DNA of 64,000 bases from Dicyema japonicum (taxonomy: Eukaryota; Animalia; Dicyemida): the NCBI GenBank assembly GCA_011109175.1, contig RDEW01000015.1:1142868-1206867 (forward strand), written 5' to 3'. Position numbers and translations under genes: made by a program. Within the stretch, counting starts at the first letter, position 1. Every line of letters begins with the position of its first letter. The notes beneath the pieces were generated by a model that worked only from the letters and a program-made list of their open reading frames with translations, searched no databases and was not told where the DNA came from. Below are positions 2,931 through 45,602 of this stretch, piece after piece.

Positions 2931-3085
2931 TAATGGACTTGTGGGAGCGCCCAACACTATCAGCTGGAAGGTTGATGGCAGTCGGCCTTCCACATGTTAG
3001 TGAGGTTGGAGCAACTAATTAACTTGAACAATGAAATGAAACTATGGAGCTCATCACAAAAATCAAATGGATGCATGTGCTCTCG

Positions 3086-3374
3086 CCTTTTCACGAGAGC
3101 CATAACATTTATAGCTCCACATAGGCAGGACACACAAGAACATAAATTTTAACTAATCGTAGAACCAAGGAATGATCTTCAATTCCCTTTTTCTTGTGTG
3201 TGGGTCCTTTCTAGACAATCCAGTTCCGCAGTGAGTATCCACTGATGACGGCGTCACTCGTCAAGTCCTTTTAGGATCGTAGATGCGTGGAACCTTCCAC
3301 CAGGTGAACAGCAGCGAGAATCGAACCCGTAACCTAAGCCACTTTAGCCCGACACCTAGCCACTACGCCACCCG
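3086..3374 (-). mobile_element. tRNA-derived SINE, copy A
   Basis: Minus strand GGGTGGCGTAGTGG (A box) and GGGTTCGATTC (B box), conserved core TTGACGAGTGACGCCGTCATCAGTGG and RTE-type 3' end; closely matches the copies at 13152 and 44225. Confidence 0.85.
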
Positions 3375-3419
3375 TCTACTGCATTGACGAGGATATATAC
3401 TCAATCAATAAAAATTTTA

Positions 3420-12610: not shown

Positions 12611-13151
12611 TGACGTTTAACGAAGCCAGATGGGCAAGACAACCCCGAAAAATTTAGTAAAGGTTATTTGCCTTTGATTTTACAAAAGCTCAAATCGAGT
12701 CGTCATCAAGAAGTCTTAATACTTTGCTTAAAATGGTGTTGAGCCTAAGCCCAATTTTTGAAGAGACTCCGGACAGCAAGCAATCACGCTTAAAGGGGTA
12801 TAGAAAATTAAATGTGAATATAAATTCATAACATTTTTTAAAAAAATCATTATTTATTCTTTTTTGTGACTCAATTCTATGTAAAGTCAATAATATTTAA
12901 TTTACGATTGAATGTTAAGTGTTGTCTTAATTCAATTCGTTAATGATATTTTACTGAAGGAATCATCATTGGTGCAATCATGAATTGATTATCTGTTAAT
13001 CAGTTGACATATTTGTGGTCATCTCAATTTTGTCAATCTTATTTTTGAATAGATTGTGAGAAATTAATTTTTCAAATTAAAAAATGAAATACTCTCAGTT
13101 AACATAATCTACCATTTTCTTAAAGATTTAAGTTTATTTTGTAAAATAAAG

Positions 13152-13450
13152 GGTGGCATAGTGGTTAGGTGTCGAACTAAAATGACTTAGGTTAAGGGTT
13201 CGATTCTCGCTGCTGTTCACCTAATGGAAGGTTCCACGCATCTACGATGCTAAAAGGGTTTGACGAGTGACGCCTTCATCAGTGGATTGTCTAGAAAAAA
13301 ACCCACAAGAAAAAGAAAAAAAAGTGAAGATCATTCCTTGGTTCTACGATTTGTTAAAATTAACTGTTCTTTACTTAAATAAAGTGTGTGTCATTCTTAT
13401 GCGGAGCTATAAATATTATGGCTCTCGTGAAAAGGCTGTTATTATTATTA
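13152..13450 (+). mobile_element. tRNA-derived SINE, copy B, with 13-bp TSD
   Basis: A box GGTGGCATAGTGG, B box GGTTCGATTC, (ATT)n tail; TTGTAAAATAAAG at 13139-13151 and 13451-13463. Confidence 0.9.
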
Positions 13451-13481
13451 TTGTAAAATAAAGATGAGTTGGTTATTTTGA

Positions 13482-15385: not shown

Positions 15386-16155
15386 ATTATAAATGAATTC
15401 GTTAATATATTTGGTTATATAGTTTATATTCATCACATATATTATTGATAACCAATCTTTTATAAGAAATCTGACCGAACTTTATAGATAACGATAATAT
15501 TTATTAGTCTTCTCATATCGATATTTGGAAGATTTGGGAAGATATTGTTTGCTTGAGAGTCTGACTGAAGGAACTGAGGAAAGAAAACTCGCCCAAGAAT
15601 GTCCAAACTAGTTATTATGAAGAACGTGAAATTGGGTGGGTCTACCTCAAAATGACCAATGATAAACTAATTCCGTAGTTGAATGGCTACTTGATTGAAT
15701 AATTCTCTTCCTTCTTTCCTTCTAGTGACGTCATCAGATCCACCTTATTCAGGAGACACCTAGTGACTGGCCAGCATTCAACAGGATCCATTTCTTCATC
15801 CCAGCGGAAAAAACGTAGTTGTTGATGTGCGTCAAAATTTTACCAAAAGGAAATGTTAGAAAATCAGTAACAACAATGAAAGAAAATCTTGAAAATACAG
15901 AAATACAAGCTTCAAAGAAATCAGAAGCAATCGTGCATCAAAAAAAGAAGACCCAACGCTAGTAGAAATGACAGAAAGAAATAAAAAGATCAGTTCTGGA
16001 GATGAAAAGAACCCGAATGTTTTAATTATTTAGCTTTCAGCCATCGACAAGATTAGGGGAAATATCAAGTTTGTAAATCTTATGTGGACTGAAATCTTGA
16101 TGGGAAAATGTTATTAAGTTTTAAGACTTGAATTTAAGAAAATAGACAGATAAAA

Positions 16156-19100
16156 TTAAATTAAATTATTAACCCCGGCTTCGCCAGCAAGTGGGAAGCC
16201 GGCGACCATCAGAGAGCGTGCAGTCCGGACAGGCCGCTCCCAGAGATCCTCGACTTTTGCATCCGGTGGTCCAGGGCAGGGAAAAAGGTCCGAACTACTC
16301 TGCCAGCCAGGAAAGGGTGGTGTCCACATCGTAGCCGAGCCAGTCCGATTCTGATCTTCCTCGGGAGCGATTGTTCCGTTGGACTGATATCAGGGGGGAA
16401 GCGCTCCAAGACTTTGTTATATTGAAGTGTCCTAATGGCCCGTGTTGAGATGAAATCATGGATTCGGCGGGTCCAAGTTGAGTCTTCTTGAGGGGGGTGA
16501 TCTTCGACAAGGCTCTTTGTAGGTCAAAGAGGGTCCTGCGTATGTATCTGCGGTTATTGTTACTTAGCAGAGCGTGAACTGGGTGATTCGGGTCGAACGA
16601 CTGCCGTAGGAATTGTAAATTACGCATTTCCAGGTGGTCATAGAGCGGGAGGATTTTCGACTCCCAATGTAAATGGTCGGTGGGGGTTGACTTTAAGCAG
16701 CCAGTTATTATTCTCAGCGCCGAGTTTTGCACTTTCTGCAGTTCTTGAGAAAGGGACAAGGAGATTGAGGGGGCCCAACTTGGTGAGGCGTAGTTGAGTG
16801 TAGTCCTGATGAACTGTTTGTAGAGAAGAGTTAAGTTTTCTTTTTGCTGACCGTTTGAGTGGCCAGCTACTGCCCGTAATATGTTAAGTTTCCGCTTGGC
16901 TTTTGTCATTACTTCCTCCACTTGTCTGTTGAAACAGAGTGAAGGATCGAAGACAACTCCAAGGATCTTCGGGTATTTATTTAAGGGGAGTGGTTCGTCT
17001 CCCAACGAGAGTGTGGGGTTTAGGTTGAATTGTCTTCGATCGGTTGTGAACAGGGTAGCTGATGACTTCGAGGTGGAAACACTCATCCAGTTTAAGTTCA
17101 TCCAGTCGGATAGCAAGTTCAGGTGGTACTGCACTTTTTCGGTGGCCAGTCGAACATCGCCACTCCTGGATGCGATTACTAGATCATCGGCATATGTCAA
17201 TAGTAACGTATTTTGGGTTGTTGGGATGTCTTTGACGTAAAGGTTGAAAAGTGAGGGTGAAAGGACTGATCCCTGGGGAACACCGTTTGGTAGGAGTCGA
17301 TATCTTGATAGATTTGAATATAGACACGTATGACCCAGTCTTCCCGAGAGGAAATTTGTGAGCCATGACTTCCATACAGAGGGAATATTTGAAGAATAGA
17401 TCTTGTTGCAGAGGACCACACGGGAGATTCTGTCGAAAGCTTTAGTTAGGTCAATAGAGGCCAAGACAGTTCGTTCCGGGGGTTTGCAGTTGTTGAAACC
17501 GTTGGAGATGTATTGGGTTAGTGTCAGTAAGTGCGTGGTGGTCGAGTGTAAAGGACGGAAACCATGTTGTGAGTCGGAGAGGTCGAGGTAGGGGGTGATT
17601 TCGTTAAGAATGATCCTTTCGAGGATTTTTGAGACAACAGATGTTAAGGAAATTGGCCTGAACGAAGAGGGCAAGGAGGAGGCTTTGTTGTTCTTGAGTA
17701 TTGGGATAATGTTCGACTTCTTCCATAACATCGGGATGAAACACCTGTTGATGGAGAATTCGTAGATATCTTTAAGTGCCAAGAGCCCGTTTGGACCGAG
17801 GTGCTTTAGGTGGAATATGCTGATCCGATCGGGTCCCGTGGCTGGTGAGTTTCTTGAGTTTGTAATGAGGTTTTGAACATGACTTATTGATACTTCGAAT
17901 CGTGCCTTTGTTACCCTTGGGGGTTTAGTAATATGAGGTCGATTTTCTTTATTCATTGGAATATGACTCATTTTGCAATAGTGAGTCATCAAGTCATTTG
18001 CCTGGCAGTGGAAATCTTTCGTTTGGTTGTCCTTTCCAAGTCTACCTCCATGGGTTGTGCTCGATTCGGTTTGATTTGATTGTATTTCTCTGATAAATCT
18101 CCAGAAACTTTGGGGTTTTGATTTTGGATTCAATCGAGAGACGAAAGTGGACCACTTCTCCTTTTTGAGCTCCGTAATGAGGTGGGTTATCTTCTTGTTT
18201 AGGGAAGAAATTTCATCTTGGAGTTGCTGGTTGGTTGTTCGGGAACGTTTTAGGTCTTCTCTCACAGATGAGATCCAATATTTCTTTGTTGAAAAATAGT
18301 TTGTAATCATGGATGAATCCTTTAGGGACGTGCTTTCTATCCGCCGAAAGGATGGCTGAGTTGAAATGTGCAATGGCTTTGTCTGGAGAGGTAAAATTTT
18401 CACAGAGAAGTTTTCCAGCGACGTTTCGACGTCAACCGTGAAGTCGATCCATCTCGCCCTTTTGTAGTTCACATAGGTTCGCCTCGACATAGTTCGTCCG
18501 AAATGCAAGAAGATGTCGATCAGAATAGGGTTATGATCTGAGGGTAAGTCATATCTGACATCCCAGTAGATCGATTTTGCAAGGGGAGCTGAGCATATGG
18601 AGAGGTCGGGAGACGTGTTAGGATCCCCAGGGCGTGTTCCACATCTCGTGTGTTGGCGGGGGTTATTAATATCACTAGGTGTTCCAGTTCAGAGATCACT
18701 TGTTTCCCTCTGTGGTCCGAATTCTGGTTTCGGAACCATAGTGGATCTTTAGCGTTTAGATCGCCGCAAATAACTATGTTTTCGTATAGTTGAAGGAATT
18801 CTAGGTTTGGTCGGTAACTCTTCTGGCAGCAAGACGAAGGGGGAATGTAGATATTCAGAATTGTGTAAGGAGTTGACATAATATTGATGGTGATGGATAG
18901 CAATTCCATATGTTTATCAGAAGCCGCTGTCAATGTGTGGTCAGTGGTATCCGTGAATGGGATGGAGTTGTGAATGAGGGTGACCAGGCCACCACCGTGA
19001 GATCCATTTGATCGCTCAGAACGGAGCAAAGAGTAGTTTTTGAATTTTGGTGTTTGGGAGAAGGCAGACAAACGTGACTCCTGTAGAAGGGCAATGTCAA

Positions 19101-19389
19101 TACGGTGTTTAACCAAGTACTCAGCCAATTCGGTATGTTTCGAGGTGATTCCATTGATGTTAAGTTGTAAGATTCTGATGGGTCTATTCTGCGGCCCTGG
19201 GTTTAGTTCAATGTCACCGGATGTCAGGAGGGATTCTTGGGAGCGAAAGCTTCGTGCCCGCTCAATGGTCGCCATCGAGATCTCCTTGAAGAGAGACGAT
19301 AGGGAAATGGTGTGGTTCTTTTTCATGTGTGCTGTGTAGGGCACAGGCACAACCAAATGACACCTCTTGGTGAGCCACAACGTCATTTT
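16156..19389 (-). mobile_element. Apparently full-length (3234 bp) single-ORF Ingi/Vingi-like non-LTR retrotransposon: 2A-APE-RT, no RNase H
   Basis: TSD CAGATAAAA at 16147-16155 and 19390-19398. APE motifs LQLNING, LLQESR, NIYIPP, GDLNAK, SDHNPI; RT motifs FRPISLTS, QHGFR, DLTKAFD, GVPQGSVLSP, YADD; C-terminal LPR..RIGLARLRCGH and DLWERP. A few 1-nt indels (~18665, ~18390, ~18255, ~16480). Confidence 0.9.
19192..19260 (-). other. 2A-like ribosomal-skipping peptide (…ESLLTSGDIELNPG|P)
   Basis: Exact D(V/I)ExNPGP consensus at 19215-19192, in frame and five residues upstream of the first APE strand (IRILQLN). Confidence 0.85.
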
Positions 19390-20949
19390 CAGATAAAACC
19401 TCCTCTATTAAAGAACTTCAACTGTCTCCTCCTTTCGGAGAGAAAACCAAGCGAGGTGCTTGTAGATGTACGAACTTATGGCTTATGTGAAAGAACTTTC
19501 CTCCACCATTGAGTCACTAAAACGTTTTGCATTGGATGGAAAAAGACTCCGTATTTTAAAGATGAGATTAAAGTCGAGGGCAGAAGTTGCTTCTTTGATA
19601 CTTCTGGGTGTTATTATTGGAGAGATGGAAATAAGTTCTGAATGGGCCAGATGGTCGCCACCAAGATTCTACAACTGTCATCATTTCGGACACATCGCTA
19701 CTCATTGAAATGAGGCAAGATGTTTTTCCTATGGAGAACCGCTTGGTTCTCTGGAGTCCCCGGAACTGACCAGCGGAAGATCTTGTGGCGGCTGTTCAAT
19801 GGCAATTAATAAATAAAGTAAATAAATAAAATAGAAACTGTGATTTCTATGAGAAGAGGAGATAACTATCGTGTGTTAATAACATGGCAGAGAGGTAAGA
19901 ATCCTCCTTCCTCACAGAACCTAGATATGAAGCCAACTGAACAAGTATGACATCATGATAAAGGTCAGTCATCTAATCCGATATTGTGAAATTAGCATGG
20001 AAGGAGTCAATTGTAGATTATGAAAATCTAAAAAGCTCTTGCTAGAGGCGTATCCAGAGAGTCTCTGAAAAAAACAAAGTTAACATCTGATTAACCGCGG
20101 TAATGTGAATTTGGACTTATTAAAAAGATCAAGCCGCCAAGACTTGAAATCGAAAGCATAAAATGGCCGATCAATCATGAGGAAAAACGAAGTTAGCAAA
20201 GGCAACGAAACGAAGATGAAGACATATGAGATTTCTGTACTGCATGAGTTTTATTATGTATCTCTACTTTGGAATGAAGCAGTAATACCAGGGACCAAGA
20301 CATCGATTTGTATTGGTACCACTTGAAGATAAGAAATCCGAAAATTATTTGACGGTTGGGTCGCTATTAGCTGTCTGTATTCAGAATTTCTGAGAAAATG
20401 AGAGATCTCAGTTCTTTGAAAACCCGATTCAAGAACACTTCCGTCAGTTGTAAGACAACAGTAATGACAAGCTCCTGAAAAAAACTATATGAAGGATTTG
20501 TATGTGGAATCCTTGAAGTATTTCGGAACCACTCAGAAGATCCCTCTTTGATTTTCCTGGCTTAAGGACCATCCTCACTATAGACCTTTTTCATGGGTGT
20601 AGAATAAAGAGAGAATATCTCCTTTGCCGATCAAATATATCCTCAAAATAGTTCCTTTACAGGCTTCCGCTTCAAAAGAAAGGTGGAGATGTATGTCCGC
20701 CCTTTATCAATTTTATCACACGTCCTACCGTCTTGGGACTGCACTTCATTCTTCGGCGTAAGAATTTCATAATAGTAATCTTCCACGATGGATTTGGGCA
20801 GGGCAAGTTCCCTTTCAACAACTGTGTCCTGCCCGAAGGACTCGTCGCCTCACTGTTAGGATTTGTTTGACGAGAATTGACCTACGATGATAAGTCCATT
20901 TTAATAATCAAACCCACGACATCAGAAGTTACGTTCAGCCTCCGGCCTT

Positions 20950-43267: not shown

Positions 43268-43855
43268 ACTATTTACCTCGGACAAAAAATTGGGAAGGAA
43301 GACATTCACCTTGAAGTTAAACAAGGTCGGCATCCCTTTCCACAGATGTCAAAGGATCTTGGGTGTGACAATTGATATGCATCTCTGTTTAACACCTCAC
43401 GTAGAAAACATTCTATTGAAATGCGAGAAGAAACTGAACGTATTGAAAAGTTTATCGGGAATATGGAAGAGTGGTACTCACCCAGTCTTGATGAACGTAT
43501 ACAAACAATACATCGAGCCATGTTTCTCATATGCATGCGCCTCGTGGGGTCCGTCCATATCTTGGACAAATATGAGGAAAATTGAGGAAATGCAAAAGAG
43601 GGCTTACAGAGTAACGGAACGTTGGATTGGTGAAGATCATCGACCCGGACCTACGCCTCTGGAGGCCCTTATGAGACTTGACTCCAGATCACGGGAAATT
43701 GGCCCTGAAAATTCAGGCAGCCGTCCTGTACGTTCATGCGCGGGCACGAAGGAAGAACGACGGGCAAAGATGAGGTCTTTGTTAAAATGCATCGGGATCA
43801 CGTGATAATTAGTTTTGTTTTACCGTGGTCTTGGGTTAAATAAATAAATAAATAA
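43268..43855 (+). mobile_element. Young 5'-truncated LINE with 29-bp TSD
   Basis: ATTAAAGGAGGCTATTCTACCGAGCTGCC at 43239-43267 and 43856-43884; ORF ends ...KCIGIT*; (TAAA)n tail. Confidence 0.9.
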
Positions 43856-44089
43856 ATTAAAGGAGGCTATTCTACCGAGCTGCCCTCTATTCCAAATACC
43901 ATCGAATTATCTACAATCATACAGAAATTTTGAGCCGATGCCATGTCCAATGAGAAGAGCTGTTCAGGATTCTCGACCCCGCTGGACTCGTCCTCACCTT
44001 TGTCGGTCTGGGATCACTTAGTTAGATGAGAACTTTTATTTCTTTCTCTTTGACCCAGTGATCCTGGAAGTAATAATATAATAATAATA

Positions 44090-44945
44090 TTGAAATGAGA
44101 GAAAAAACTGAACGTATTGAAAAGTTTATCGGGAATATGAAGAGTGGTCATGGTTCTCCCGCTGTTTACCTGTGCTTAAGTGAATCTCTTCACACTGACA
44201 TTCAGGGCACTGGGCAGAGAAGCCGGGTGGTATAGTGGTTAGGCGTCGGGCTAAAGTGACTTAGGTTACTGGTTCGATTCTCGCTGCTGTTCACCTGGTG
44301 GAAGGTTCTAGGCATCTACGATGCTAAAAGGGTTTGACGAGTGACGCCGTCATCAGTGGATACTCACTGCGGAACTGGATTGTCTAGAAAGGACCCATAC
44401 ACAAGAAAAAGAAAAAAGAAGTGAAGTTAATTCCTTGGTTCAACGATTAGTTAAAATTAACTGTTCTTTACTTAAATAAAGTGTGTGTCCTGCTTATGCG
44501 GAGCTATAAATATTATGGCTCTCGTGAAAAGGCTATTATTATTATTATTATTATTATGGAAGAGTAGTACTCACCCAGTCTTGATGAACGTGCACAAACA
44601 GTACATCGAGCCATGTTTCTCATATGCATGTGCCTCATGGGGACTGTCCATATCTTGGACTAATATGAAGAAAATTGAGGAAATGCAAAAGACGGCTTAC
44701 AGAGTAACGGAGCGTTGGATTCGTGAAAATCACCGAGCCGGACCTATGCCTCTGGAGGCCCTTATGAGACTTAACTCTAGATCACGGGAAATTGGCCCTG
44801 AAAATTCAGGCAGCCGTCTGTACGTTCATGCTCGGGCACAAAGAAAGAACACCGGGCAAAATGAGGTCTGTTTTGTTAATGCATCGGGATCACGTGATAA
44901 TTAGTTTGGTTTTACCGTGGTCTTGTGTTAAATAAATAAAAAAAT
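44090..44945 (+). mobile_element. Second copy of the same LINE 3' end, interrupted by SINE copy C
   Basis: 44090-44148 and 44555-44945 align nearly base for base with 43420-43855. Confidence 0.85.
44225..44554 (+). mobile_element. tRNA-derived SINE, copy C (longest, best preserved)
   Basis: A box GGTGGTATAGTGG, B box GGTTCGATTC, core, RTE-type hairpin, (ATT)n tail; imperfect TSD TATG(G)AAGAGT(G/A)GT at 44136-44148 and 44555-44568. Confidence 0.9.
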
Positions 44946-45602
44946 AAAAATAATGTTTGACTTTATCACATATTCATGCGTTTGACTATGCATGGGAGGG
45001 CATCTGAACGACCGCGTGGCGCCATGTGGTGCTGCATGGTTGATTGGTTGAAATTTTCTGTTTTTTTTCTCTGTTCCTTCTTTCTCTTCCTATTAGAGTG
45101 GCTTCATGTGATCCATCTGACTAGGTGACGCCCAGTGCCTTGCTGGCAAGAAAAAAGATCATGGAGGGGTTTCCACGACTGCAAGTATAGACGTCTTTTA
45201 CCCTTTATGTTGATTCCGGATGAACTCTATATCTGTAGAAGTGGAAACTAAATACACTAAATTAGTTATTTACTTTAACTTCTTTTTCGGTGTGTCCGGG
45301 GTTAATAAAATAAATAAATAAAATAACGTCTGATGACATCGGATCTGTCAGTCGTGGGTTCGAATCCGAAAGATGTACTTTTCAATCAAGTTCAATTCTC
45401 GTCATATAGATTTCACCCGTGAAGATGTTTTTCTGGAAATATTTGTCGTTTTTTAGTTTCTTAATATTATTAAAAAACTAATATGTAAGGATATTTCACT
45501 ATAAAAAATTGGATTATTTTACAAAATTTCAATTTTTTGATGGTTAACAATTTAAGAATAAAATTTAGGCGCCAAATTTTAATAATTTCACAGTGTTTAC
45601 TG

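Follow-up and report, generated by a model that had tools for sequence, protein, structure and literature searches.

A candidate HDV-like ribozyme at the 5' end of a 2A-LINE, compared with a group of similar folds in related animal elements

The R2, R4, RTE and L1Tc elements are known to carry an HDV-like ribozyme at their 5' ends, and the canonical arrangement of the HDV ribozyme includes a loop L3 with a U as first and a G as sixth nucleotide, together with a helix P1.1 formed on L3 positions 2-3. To our knowledge, a 5' ribozyme and a 2A peptide have so far been linked in trypanosomes only. The HDV descriptor and the claim of a role in translation initiation are both reportedly due to Webb et al. 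2009 and Ruminski et al. 2011.

Among the described systems, L1Tc from Trypanosoma cruzi, a member of the ingi clade, begins with the ribozyme L1TcRz, also designated Pr77, followed by an N-terminal 2A, and Pr77 serves in this element as promoter as well as ribozyme (PMC3185411, PMC3383444, PMC4035085). The combination of a ribozyme and a 2A is accordingly described for L1Tc (PMC3185411, PMC3383444). According to a study of R2 (PMC3774820), R2, R4 and Dong carry 5' HDV-like ribozymes, and rigid conservation in the R2 ribozymes applies to the catalytic C and to four further positions. With respect to animals, 2A-like sequences were reported by Odon et al. 2013 at the N-terminus of metazoan non-LTR retrotransposons, the distance to the start of the ORF being 40-80 aa in molluscan, echinoderm, cnidarian and chordate LINEs of the single-ORF APE type (PMC3708506). 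The 2A of animal LINEs is thus already described (PMC3708506, PMC3894237), and ribozymes are mentioned in neither of these two papers.

The present analysis deals with the first nucleotides of a 2A-LINE located in a stretch of DNA of 64,000 nucleotides, hereafter the window, for which an earlier note, made from the sequence, had proposed a self-cleaving ribozyme of the HDV type. Four direct observations form its basis, namely the potential of this segment to fold in the HDV manner, the exact terminal position of the fold, its statistical rarity and the finding that related elements carry a covarying ribozyme at this very position.

The element and its boundaries

The coordinates of all features are collected in Table 1. 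The element is read on the minus strand, and its numbering follows this strand, nt n corresponding to position 19390 - n and nt 1-79 to positions 19389-19311. Both ends of the LINE are set by a target-site duplication, to which a step in sequence depth is added on the 5' side. When public contigs were compared with positions 18990-19589, the summed word depth amounted to ~44,000-180,000 up to 19389 and to 440 from 19390, the step falling precisely at 19389/19390. In the same comparison, some two thirds of the pieces were at least 99% identical, and a single common variant, G>A at 19309, was found. Owing to this depth, this identity and this single common variant, the LINE family has to be considered as very young, with several hundred copies and with the boundary already recognized in the earlier note. 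Among these several hundred copies, the segment 19311-19389 displays zero variants and, consequently, no covariation within the family of the window. The 5' junctions of two other copies are located at nt 3 and nt 4, that of the window copy at nt 1.

The ORF open from 19386 contains the 2A motif SGDIELNPGP followed by an AP endonuclease, and the reverse-transcriptase ORF occurs downstream. In the window copy, the APE ORF (end 18520) and the RT ORF (from 18508) belong to different frames, so that this copy either requires a frameshift or is broken at 18508-18522; unlike these split frames, one continuous ORF is observed in the relatives. Exo_endo_phos and RVT_1 were the only domains detected by Pfam in the element, where no RNase H was found; RNase H is present in lower-ranked relatives of the reverse transcriptase, and Vingi elements are devoid of it. 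An internally deleted derivative of the element retains the 5' 313 nt (to 19077), joined on the minus strand to the last ~50 nt (~16190); in contigs of the public run X6, this derivative appears as a short, abundant and non-autonomous element with 27 nt missing at 19143. Neither the exact-protein look-up nor the metagenome scan returned anything for the 288-aa ORF of the window, and a word-based protein search with the N-terminal ORF gave a single distant match. No RNA runs holding the element were identified, all public runs that contain the sequence having the appearance of DNA.

Other repeats occur in the leader and elsewhere in the window. A 40-nt stretch of the leader (19237-19276, minus strand), around ATGGCGACC...CGCTCC, is common to other repeat families; it contains a GAGCG/CGCUC hairpin, and 6-10 contigs match that stretch alone, with differing sequence on both sides. 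A tRNA-derived SINE is present in three copies (3085-3380, 13151-13452 and 44218-44549), and the sequence CACACAAGAAAAAGAA contained in its body resembles nt 59-74 of the LINE, CACACAUGAAAAAGAA, possibly by coincidence. The 3' end of another LINE is found in two copies (43462-43856 and 44555-44948), 88-96% alike and provided with an (AAATA)n tail, with one of these SINE copies between them. The 12-mer GCGGGCACGAAG, common to the leader of the 2A-LINE and to positions 43740-43751 in the 3' region of this other LINE, looks coincidental and was discarded.

Table 1. Features of the 2A-LINE of the window, of its candidate 5' fold and of the related elements (window positions unless a locus is named).
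Feature	Position	Strand	Details
LINE, single-ORF type, AP endonuclease and reverse transcriptase, N-terminal 2A	16156..19389	-	3,234 nt; ORFs and Pfam
Target-site duplication, 5' copy, TTTTATCTG (minus-strand reading)	19390..19398	.	9 bp; read directly
Target-site duplication, 3' copy, TTTTATCTG	16147-16155		read directly
Ribosome-skipping 2A motif (SGDIELNPGP), NPGP codons	19192..19203	-	185 nt downstream of the P1 start
In-frame AUG, nt 64-66 (M21), within CACAUG	19324..19326	-	position matches the CAAAUG start codon of relatives
Candidate HDV-like nested double-pseudoknot fold, register A (nt 2-79)	19311..19388	-	descriptor matches, helix check, energies
P1 5' strand, AAAUGAC, nt 2-8	19382..19388	-	7 Watson-Crick pairs with 19355-19361
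P1 3' strand, GUCAUUU, nt 29-35	19355..19361	-	descriptor and helix check
P1.1, G36 and G37 with C21 and C20	19354-19353 with 19369-19370	-	descriptor and helix check
P3/L3 core, register A	19362..19375	-	CUC (19374-19372)/GAG (19366-19364), L3 ACCAA
P3/L3 core, register C	19362..19375	-	GCU (19375-19373)/GGU (19364-19362), L3 CACCAAGA
P4 hairpin, nt 39-62	19328..19351	-	9 bp, one bulge; -10.1 kcal/mol alone; pair probabilities 0.5-0.99
C63, candidate catalytic base in register A	19327	-	directly after P4
P2 3' strand, register A, CCACA (nt 75-79)	19311..19315	-	pairs with UGUGG 19379-19375 (nt 11-15)
Folds of the related elements, first six	L002:138-216, L006:351-416, L007:1449-1508, L008:88-150, L011:95-171, L014:3-100		L008 with L009 counted as one element
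Folds of the related elements, other five	L022:1438-1500, L028:80-152, L032:49-117, L040:1309-1363, L053:213-283
Octopus sinensis copies (GCA_006345805.1)	L001:1486, L051, L052

The fold of the terminal segment and the role of chance

A script check of nt 1-79 recovered all of the helices listed in the earlier note, P1, P2, P3, the pairing of L3 in P1.1 and P4, as well as C63, and both the descriptor and the helix check retrieved them in the HDV order P1-P2-P3-L3-P3'-P1'-P1.1-P4-J4/2-P2'. The fold starts among the first bases of the element, P1 beginning with nt 2 at the boundary given by the TTTTATCTG duplication and the depth step, and the ORF is open through it from the AUG at nt 4-6, so that the description given in the note holds in these respects also. 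Cleavage is predicted to occur 5' of nt 2.

Several registers are nevertheless available for P2, P3 and J4/2 among the descriptor solutions, owing to the GU/CA-rich UGUG/CACA repeats. In register A, P3 is made of nt 16-18/24-26, L3 has 5 nt, and an A-rich J4/2 of 12 nt precedes the 3' strand of P2. Register C, in which P1 AAAUGAC is followed by a single g, P2 UUGUG, P3 GCU, L3 CACCAAGA, GGU, P1', gg, P4, CACA and P2' CAUGA, extends over 66 nt, the length found in the related element L006, and ends at 19323 (nt 67), with the AUG at nt 64-66 inside P2'. Depending on the register, L3 consists of 5 nt (register A) or of 8 nt with G24 and devoid of a 5' U (register C), the CC/GG P1.1 being present, and the candidate catalytic C of J4/2 is either C63, with a J4/2 of 12 nt, or, in the alternative registers, belongs to CACA (C59 or C61) or to CCUA. 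The energies calculated for register A are -15.8 and -15.7 kcal/mol, vs -20.1 kcal/mol for the nested MFE, and those of register C are weak (-8.8 and -3.4 kcal/mol). Two true members of the group described below gave -15.8, -15.4 and -23.3 kcal/mol (L006) and -14.9, -12.8 and -20.2 kcal/mol (L053). By these calculations, the energy of register A equals that of true members and register C is more family-like but weak, and the register is ambiguous.

The frequency of such folds was estimated with an HDV descriptor that comprises a P1 of 7 bp, J1/2 of 0-5, P2 of at least 5 bp, P3 of 3 bp, L3 of 5-9, J3/1 of 0-2, a two-pair P1.1, P4 of at least 3 bp and a J4/2 of 3-12 nt starting with C. In its permissive form it matches 47 of 128,000 window positions, and 3 window positions when a G-C P1.1 is required, which corresponds to the level of block-shuffled windows without any enrichment. 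As the matches over the whole window are at chance level, the significance of the fold rests on its location. In this respect, dinucleotide shuffles of nt 1-90 match the descriptor with a start in nt 1-4 in 4 cases out of 100,000 with a G-C P1.1 required, and in 2 out of 20,000 with any Watson-Crick P1.1. Other HDV-like solutions were absent from nt 6-330 of the element, relaxed settings included. A half-descriptor restricted to P1 plus an RCY/RGY P3, and derived from the relatives only except that an L3 of 8 as well as 7 nt was allowed to fit the window, matches the 5' end in 248 of 100,000 shuffles.

These figures bear on one of the alternative explanations, a chance pairing within a GU/CA-rich coding leader whose 5' boundary would be a mere RNA start. 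The count of descriptor matches over the window, the many alternative registers offered by the UGUG/CACA repeats, the ordinary nested MFE (z = -0.7) and the fact that the fold was noticed post hoc within a very large scan would all agree with a chance pairing, but it leaves unexplained a location-specific probability of ~4e-5, a real ribozyme in the relatives at the same distance from the 2A, and the GCU..G.GGU and CC/GG elements common to the window and the core of the group. Moreover, canonical relatives are equally unremarkable in nested-only folding and show the same low probabilities for P1 or P2, so that the weak z-score and the pair probabilities are uninformative. Chance is accordingly regarded as very unlikely.

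A ribozyme group in related 2A-LINEs

Rfam gave no match in the window, either at the gathering threshold or at E <=10. Since, in addition, the LINE family is too young for covariation, related 2A-LINEs were fetched. A full-library protein search identified 3,715 relatives of the N-terminal ORF, and an N-terminal 2A occurs in 78 of 151 proteins (the best 150 of the 3,715 plus one earlier match). The corresponding DNA, from metagenomes and assemblies, was obtained by exact-protein look-ups and one metagenome scan. At least 11 independent elements share a conserved HDV-like fold, one of them being represented by the two loci L008 and L009.

In the 5' part of this fold, a P1 of 4-7 bp is followed by J1/2 NAA, a P2 of 6-9 bp and a P3 5' strand GCC or GCU. 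The middle part consists of an L3 of 7 nt (U-N-N-N-C/A-G-N), the P3 3' strand GGU, AGU or AGC, P1' and a two-base P1.1, and the 3' part of P4 (absent in L040), J4/2 CAAAU or CAAAG, and P2'. In a model-fitted alignment of nine members, 98.8% of the cells are paired and double-sided changes occur in all six P1 pairs; the covariation score of P1 in the nine members reaches 0.90, vs at most 0.18 with slid partners. The sequences of P2, P4 and P1.1 are wholly different from one member to another and their complementarity is kept. A member outside the training set, L053, was found by the covariance model at 20.7 bits. The loci L008 and L009 correspond to independent insertions of one family, whose sequences agree to 100% downstream and to 13% upstream, and their identity begins precisely at nt 1 of P1; in this relative, the 5' end of the element is indeed made up of the ribozyme. 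The distance from P1 to NPGP varies from 165 to 363 nt in the relatives, five of them being at 173-193 nt, vs 185 nt in the window. Three further loci gave little, two being 5'-truncated contigs (L003 and L004) and the third (L005) showing a degenerate core with one P1 mismatch.

These data point to a conserved and covarying HDV-like ribozyme group, previously undescribed, at the 5' ends of animal 2A-LINEs. A literature search yielded no description of HDV-like ribozymes from 2A-LINEs of animals. Early genome-wide screens (Webb et al. 2009) may have caught some members of the group.

The window resembles this group first by its position. Its fold lies at the 5' terminus of a single-ORF 2A-LINE, at a distance from NPGP within the range of the group and with the 2A frame open from nt 4; in both, the terminal fold is followed by a leader of ~40-120 codons, then by the 2A and by the APE-RT. 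Both also have in common P3 strands GCU/GGU, a two-pair P1.1, a C next after P4, and an AUG at the 3' margin of the fold. In register C, the core shares with the group the GCU...G.GGU pattern, the second-to-last G of L3 and the CC/GG P1.1. In contrast, the spacing between P1 and P3 is 6 nt in the window and 9-10 in the group, L3 has 5 or 8 nt without a 5' U instead of 7 nt (U-N4-G-N), J4/2 is devoid of the CAAAU that occurs as CAAAU/G in the group, and the J1/2 NAA of the group is not exactly present. The P1 of the window is A/U-rich, with A-U as first pair, and the 5-nt L3 and 12-nt J4/2 of register A were found in no relative examined.

The window scores below zero with the covariance model of the group. 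The model built from nine relatives, which spans the 5' half of the fold (P1, J1/2, P2, P3, L3 and P1'), gave no match to the candidate at E <=10 when the whole window was scanned, nor in a 121-nt region. The same model also misses a true member, L008. As for Rfam, no match was obtained on 16 related loci, every clearly folded relative included, and the null result of the window therefore carries little power.

Taking into account the terminal position, the low probability of chance and the covarying ribozyme at the same place in the relatives, the 5' end of the window element likely descends from an HDV-like ribozyme. That it still functions as such, as a working, diverged member of the ribozyme group of animal 2A-LINEs, is a reading to which we give an even chance on the comparisons made here. 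A rather unlikely alternative is that the segment descends from the ribozyme of the relatives and cuts no longer, or weakly, its 5' end being set by an internal promoter in the same segment and its helices serving RNA stability or translation. Such a loss of activity would account for the changes at the (nearly) invariant positions of the relatives (GCC, the 5' U of L3 and CAAAU) and for the failure of the relatives' model to match the candidate. Against it stand the persistence of the complete HDV topology, with a G-C P1.1 and a stable P4 and P2, which is very improbable by chance, an energy comparable to that of active-looking relatives, and the youth and great success of the family, which imply that the 5' module works as it is. 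The scattering of the 5' ends over nt 1-4 can be read in two ways: start-site heterogeneity at a promoter would produce it, but the variable junctions at nt 1, 3 and 4 also count in favour of a ribozyme, since R2 shows the same variation with cleavage at the 5' end of the element, as stated in PMC3774820.

In the APE tree, the window belongs to a star-like radiation of mostly ribozyme-bearing lineages and has L005 and L002 as its nearest neighbours by path length; as the tree is an unresolved star, it suggests the presence of a ribozyme in the ancestor, and not more. By its endonuclease, the closest relative is a family from Octopus sinensis, 46% identical to the window. Three copies of this family share one and the same sequence from TTTT(T)AGCGCGCGTCATGTGG on, their upstream parts being unrelated, and this defines a sharp 5' end located ~180 nt before NPGP. 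The proteins annotated as uncharacterized LOC115229065, LOC115231817 and LOC115229379 correspond to the N-terminal ORFs of this young family. The blocks UGUGGYUCACC and AAAAAGAACCA are common to the 5' ends of the octopus and window elements, with a similar spacing, and no complete HDV solution was found at or near the octopus 5' end. A covariation of P1 between octopus and window, noticed by eye, was withdrawn, the alignment being ambiguous and the full HDV solution being absent in octopus.

When the octopus and window sequences were submitted together to RNAalifold, a different common hairpin was obtained, in which GGYUCACC pairs with GGU.G.GCC (-6.4 and -6.6 kcal/mol). This hairpin, together with the two blocks conserved at similar spacing, agrees with a structured 5' element of another role, e.g., a protein-binding or translation-initiation hairpin, whose HDV-like topology would be incidental, and part of the conservation of the blocks may lie at the peptide level (W-L/F-T and K-K/R..T-I). 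However, the common hairpin is devoid of covariation, a single one-sided change being observed, and competes with the very stable P4, and another role leaves unexplained both the start at the terminal nucleotide and the ribozyme of the relatives, which makes this explanation unlikely. The octopus family also retains the sequence blocks without the full fold, its hairpin lying 10 nt from the end, an observation in favour of a 5' end that cuts no longer, or weakly, in the window element. On balance, the octopus comparison is neither for nor against a ribozyme, and the sub-lineage nearest to the window is, as judged from these sequences, one that drifted from the canonical core.

Translation, proposed mechanism and known systems

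Two AUG codons of the 2A frame come into question as start codons. The first one, at nt 4-6, would sit 2 nt from the uncapped end after cleavage, inside P1. The second one, at nt 64-66, would give a leader of 40 aa from M21 to NPGP, vs 44-47 aa in L006 and L007. In the relatives, an AUG within CAAAUG lies at the 3' margin of the fold in L006, L007, L028, L032 and L053, in the 2A frame in L006 and L007 only. From its position, the AUG at nt 64-66 appears as the likelier start, in which case the ribozyme would encode a small part of the leader. The earlier note had suggested a cassette in which the ribozyme defines the RNA end and the 2A discards a ribozyme-encoded leader. The latter part loses ground if translation starts at nt 64-66, but the succession of ribozyme, leader and 2A is kept alive as an idea by the relatives, since the 2A frame is stop-free from P1 to NPGP in nine out of 11 of them and since L014 and L022 have zero in-frame AUG between P1 and the 2A, with which a ribozyme-leader-2A cassette fits.

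If the 5' end of the window element is a working member of the group, the following course of events may be proposed. The element would be transcribed inside a longer host read-through transcript, in which the nested double pseudoknot would fold, with P1 (nt 2-8/29-35), the CC/GG P1.1, P3, P4 (nt 39-62) and P2, and would cut the RNA immediately 5' of P1. Because of the proposed position of this cut, the template for retrotransposition would start at the element's own first bases, with a compact fold at its uncapped 5' end. Translation would be initiated inside the fold or shortly behind it, the AUG at nt 64-66 being the most likely site, and the 2A peptide would then free a short leader from the endonuclease-reverse transcriptase. 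As a more general proposal, possible though doubtful at this stage, single-ORF LINEs of animals may share an old and widespread module in which an HDV-like ribozyme makes the 5' end, the fold, on an RNA without a cap, directs initiation to the cleavage site or its vicinity and the 2A discards an arbitrary leader, the family of the window representing an active structural variant of the HDV fold whose L3 is shortened and whose A-rich J4/2 is long.

What these results newly bring is a connection, in animal LINEs, of a 5' HDV-like ribozyme with a 2A. If true, it would explain how promoter-less single-ORF LINEs acquire a defined 5' end, and it would offer a natural set of sequences for the question of how much drift the HDV core tolerates without losing its ability to cut. 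It would also bear on the native 5' UTRs of Vingi-type elements used as tools for gene insertion; no ribozyme is mentioned in the 5' UTRs of the Vingi-type gene-insertion platforms of PMC13708176.

Compared with R2, as described in PMC3774820, the window element shares a ribozyme which frees the element RNA from a co-transcript, a role that is proposed here for the window. According to the same source, the R2 ribozymes have a P1 of 6-7 bp, a P3 of 3 bp, a variable P4 and a scarcely conserved primary sequence, their 5' junctions vary when cleavage coincides with the element end, and close to the fold the ORF is in many cases open and devoid of an AUG; the window element is alike in these respects. 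How far the window retains the positions given there as rigidly conserved in R2 depends on the register. R2 inserts site-specifically in rDNA by means of a restriction-like endonuclease, whereas the window element is dispersed, of the APE type and provided with a 2A.

L1Tc differs from the window element by its host, a kinetoplastid vs an animal-type genome, and by the single pair of P1.1 in L1TcRz, vs two G-C pairs in the window; cleavage, predicted for the window element, has been demonstrated for L1TcRz. The resemblances between both elements are the following. An HDV-like fold of ~77 nt occupies the first bases of a single-ORF LINE of the APE type, the first pair need not be a G-U (C1 in L1Tc, A2 in the window), and a 2A peptide occurs near the N-terminus of the ORF. 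Finally, deletion derivatives that keep the 5' module accompany both elements, NARTc/RIME in the case of L1Tc (PMC4035085) and the derivative with the 5' 313 nt in the family of the window.
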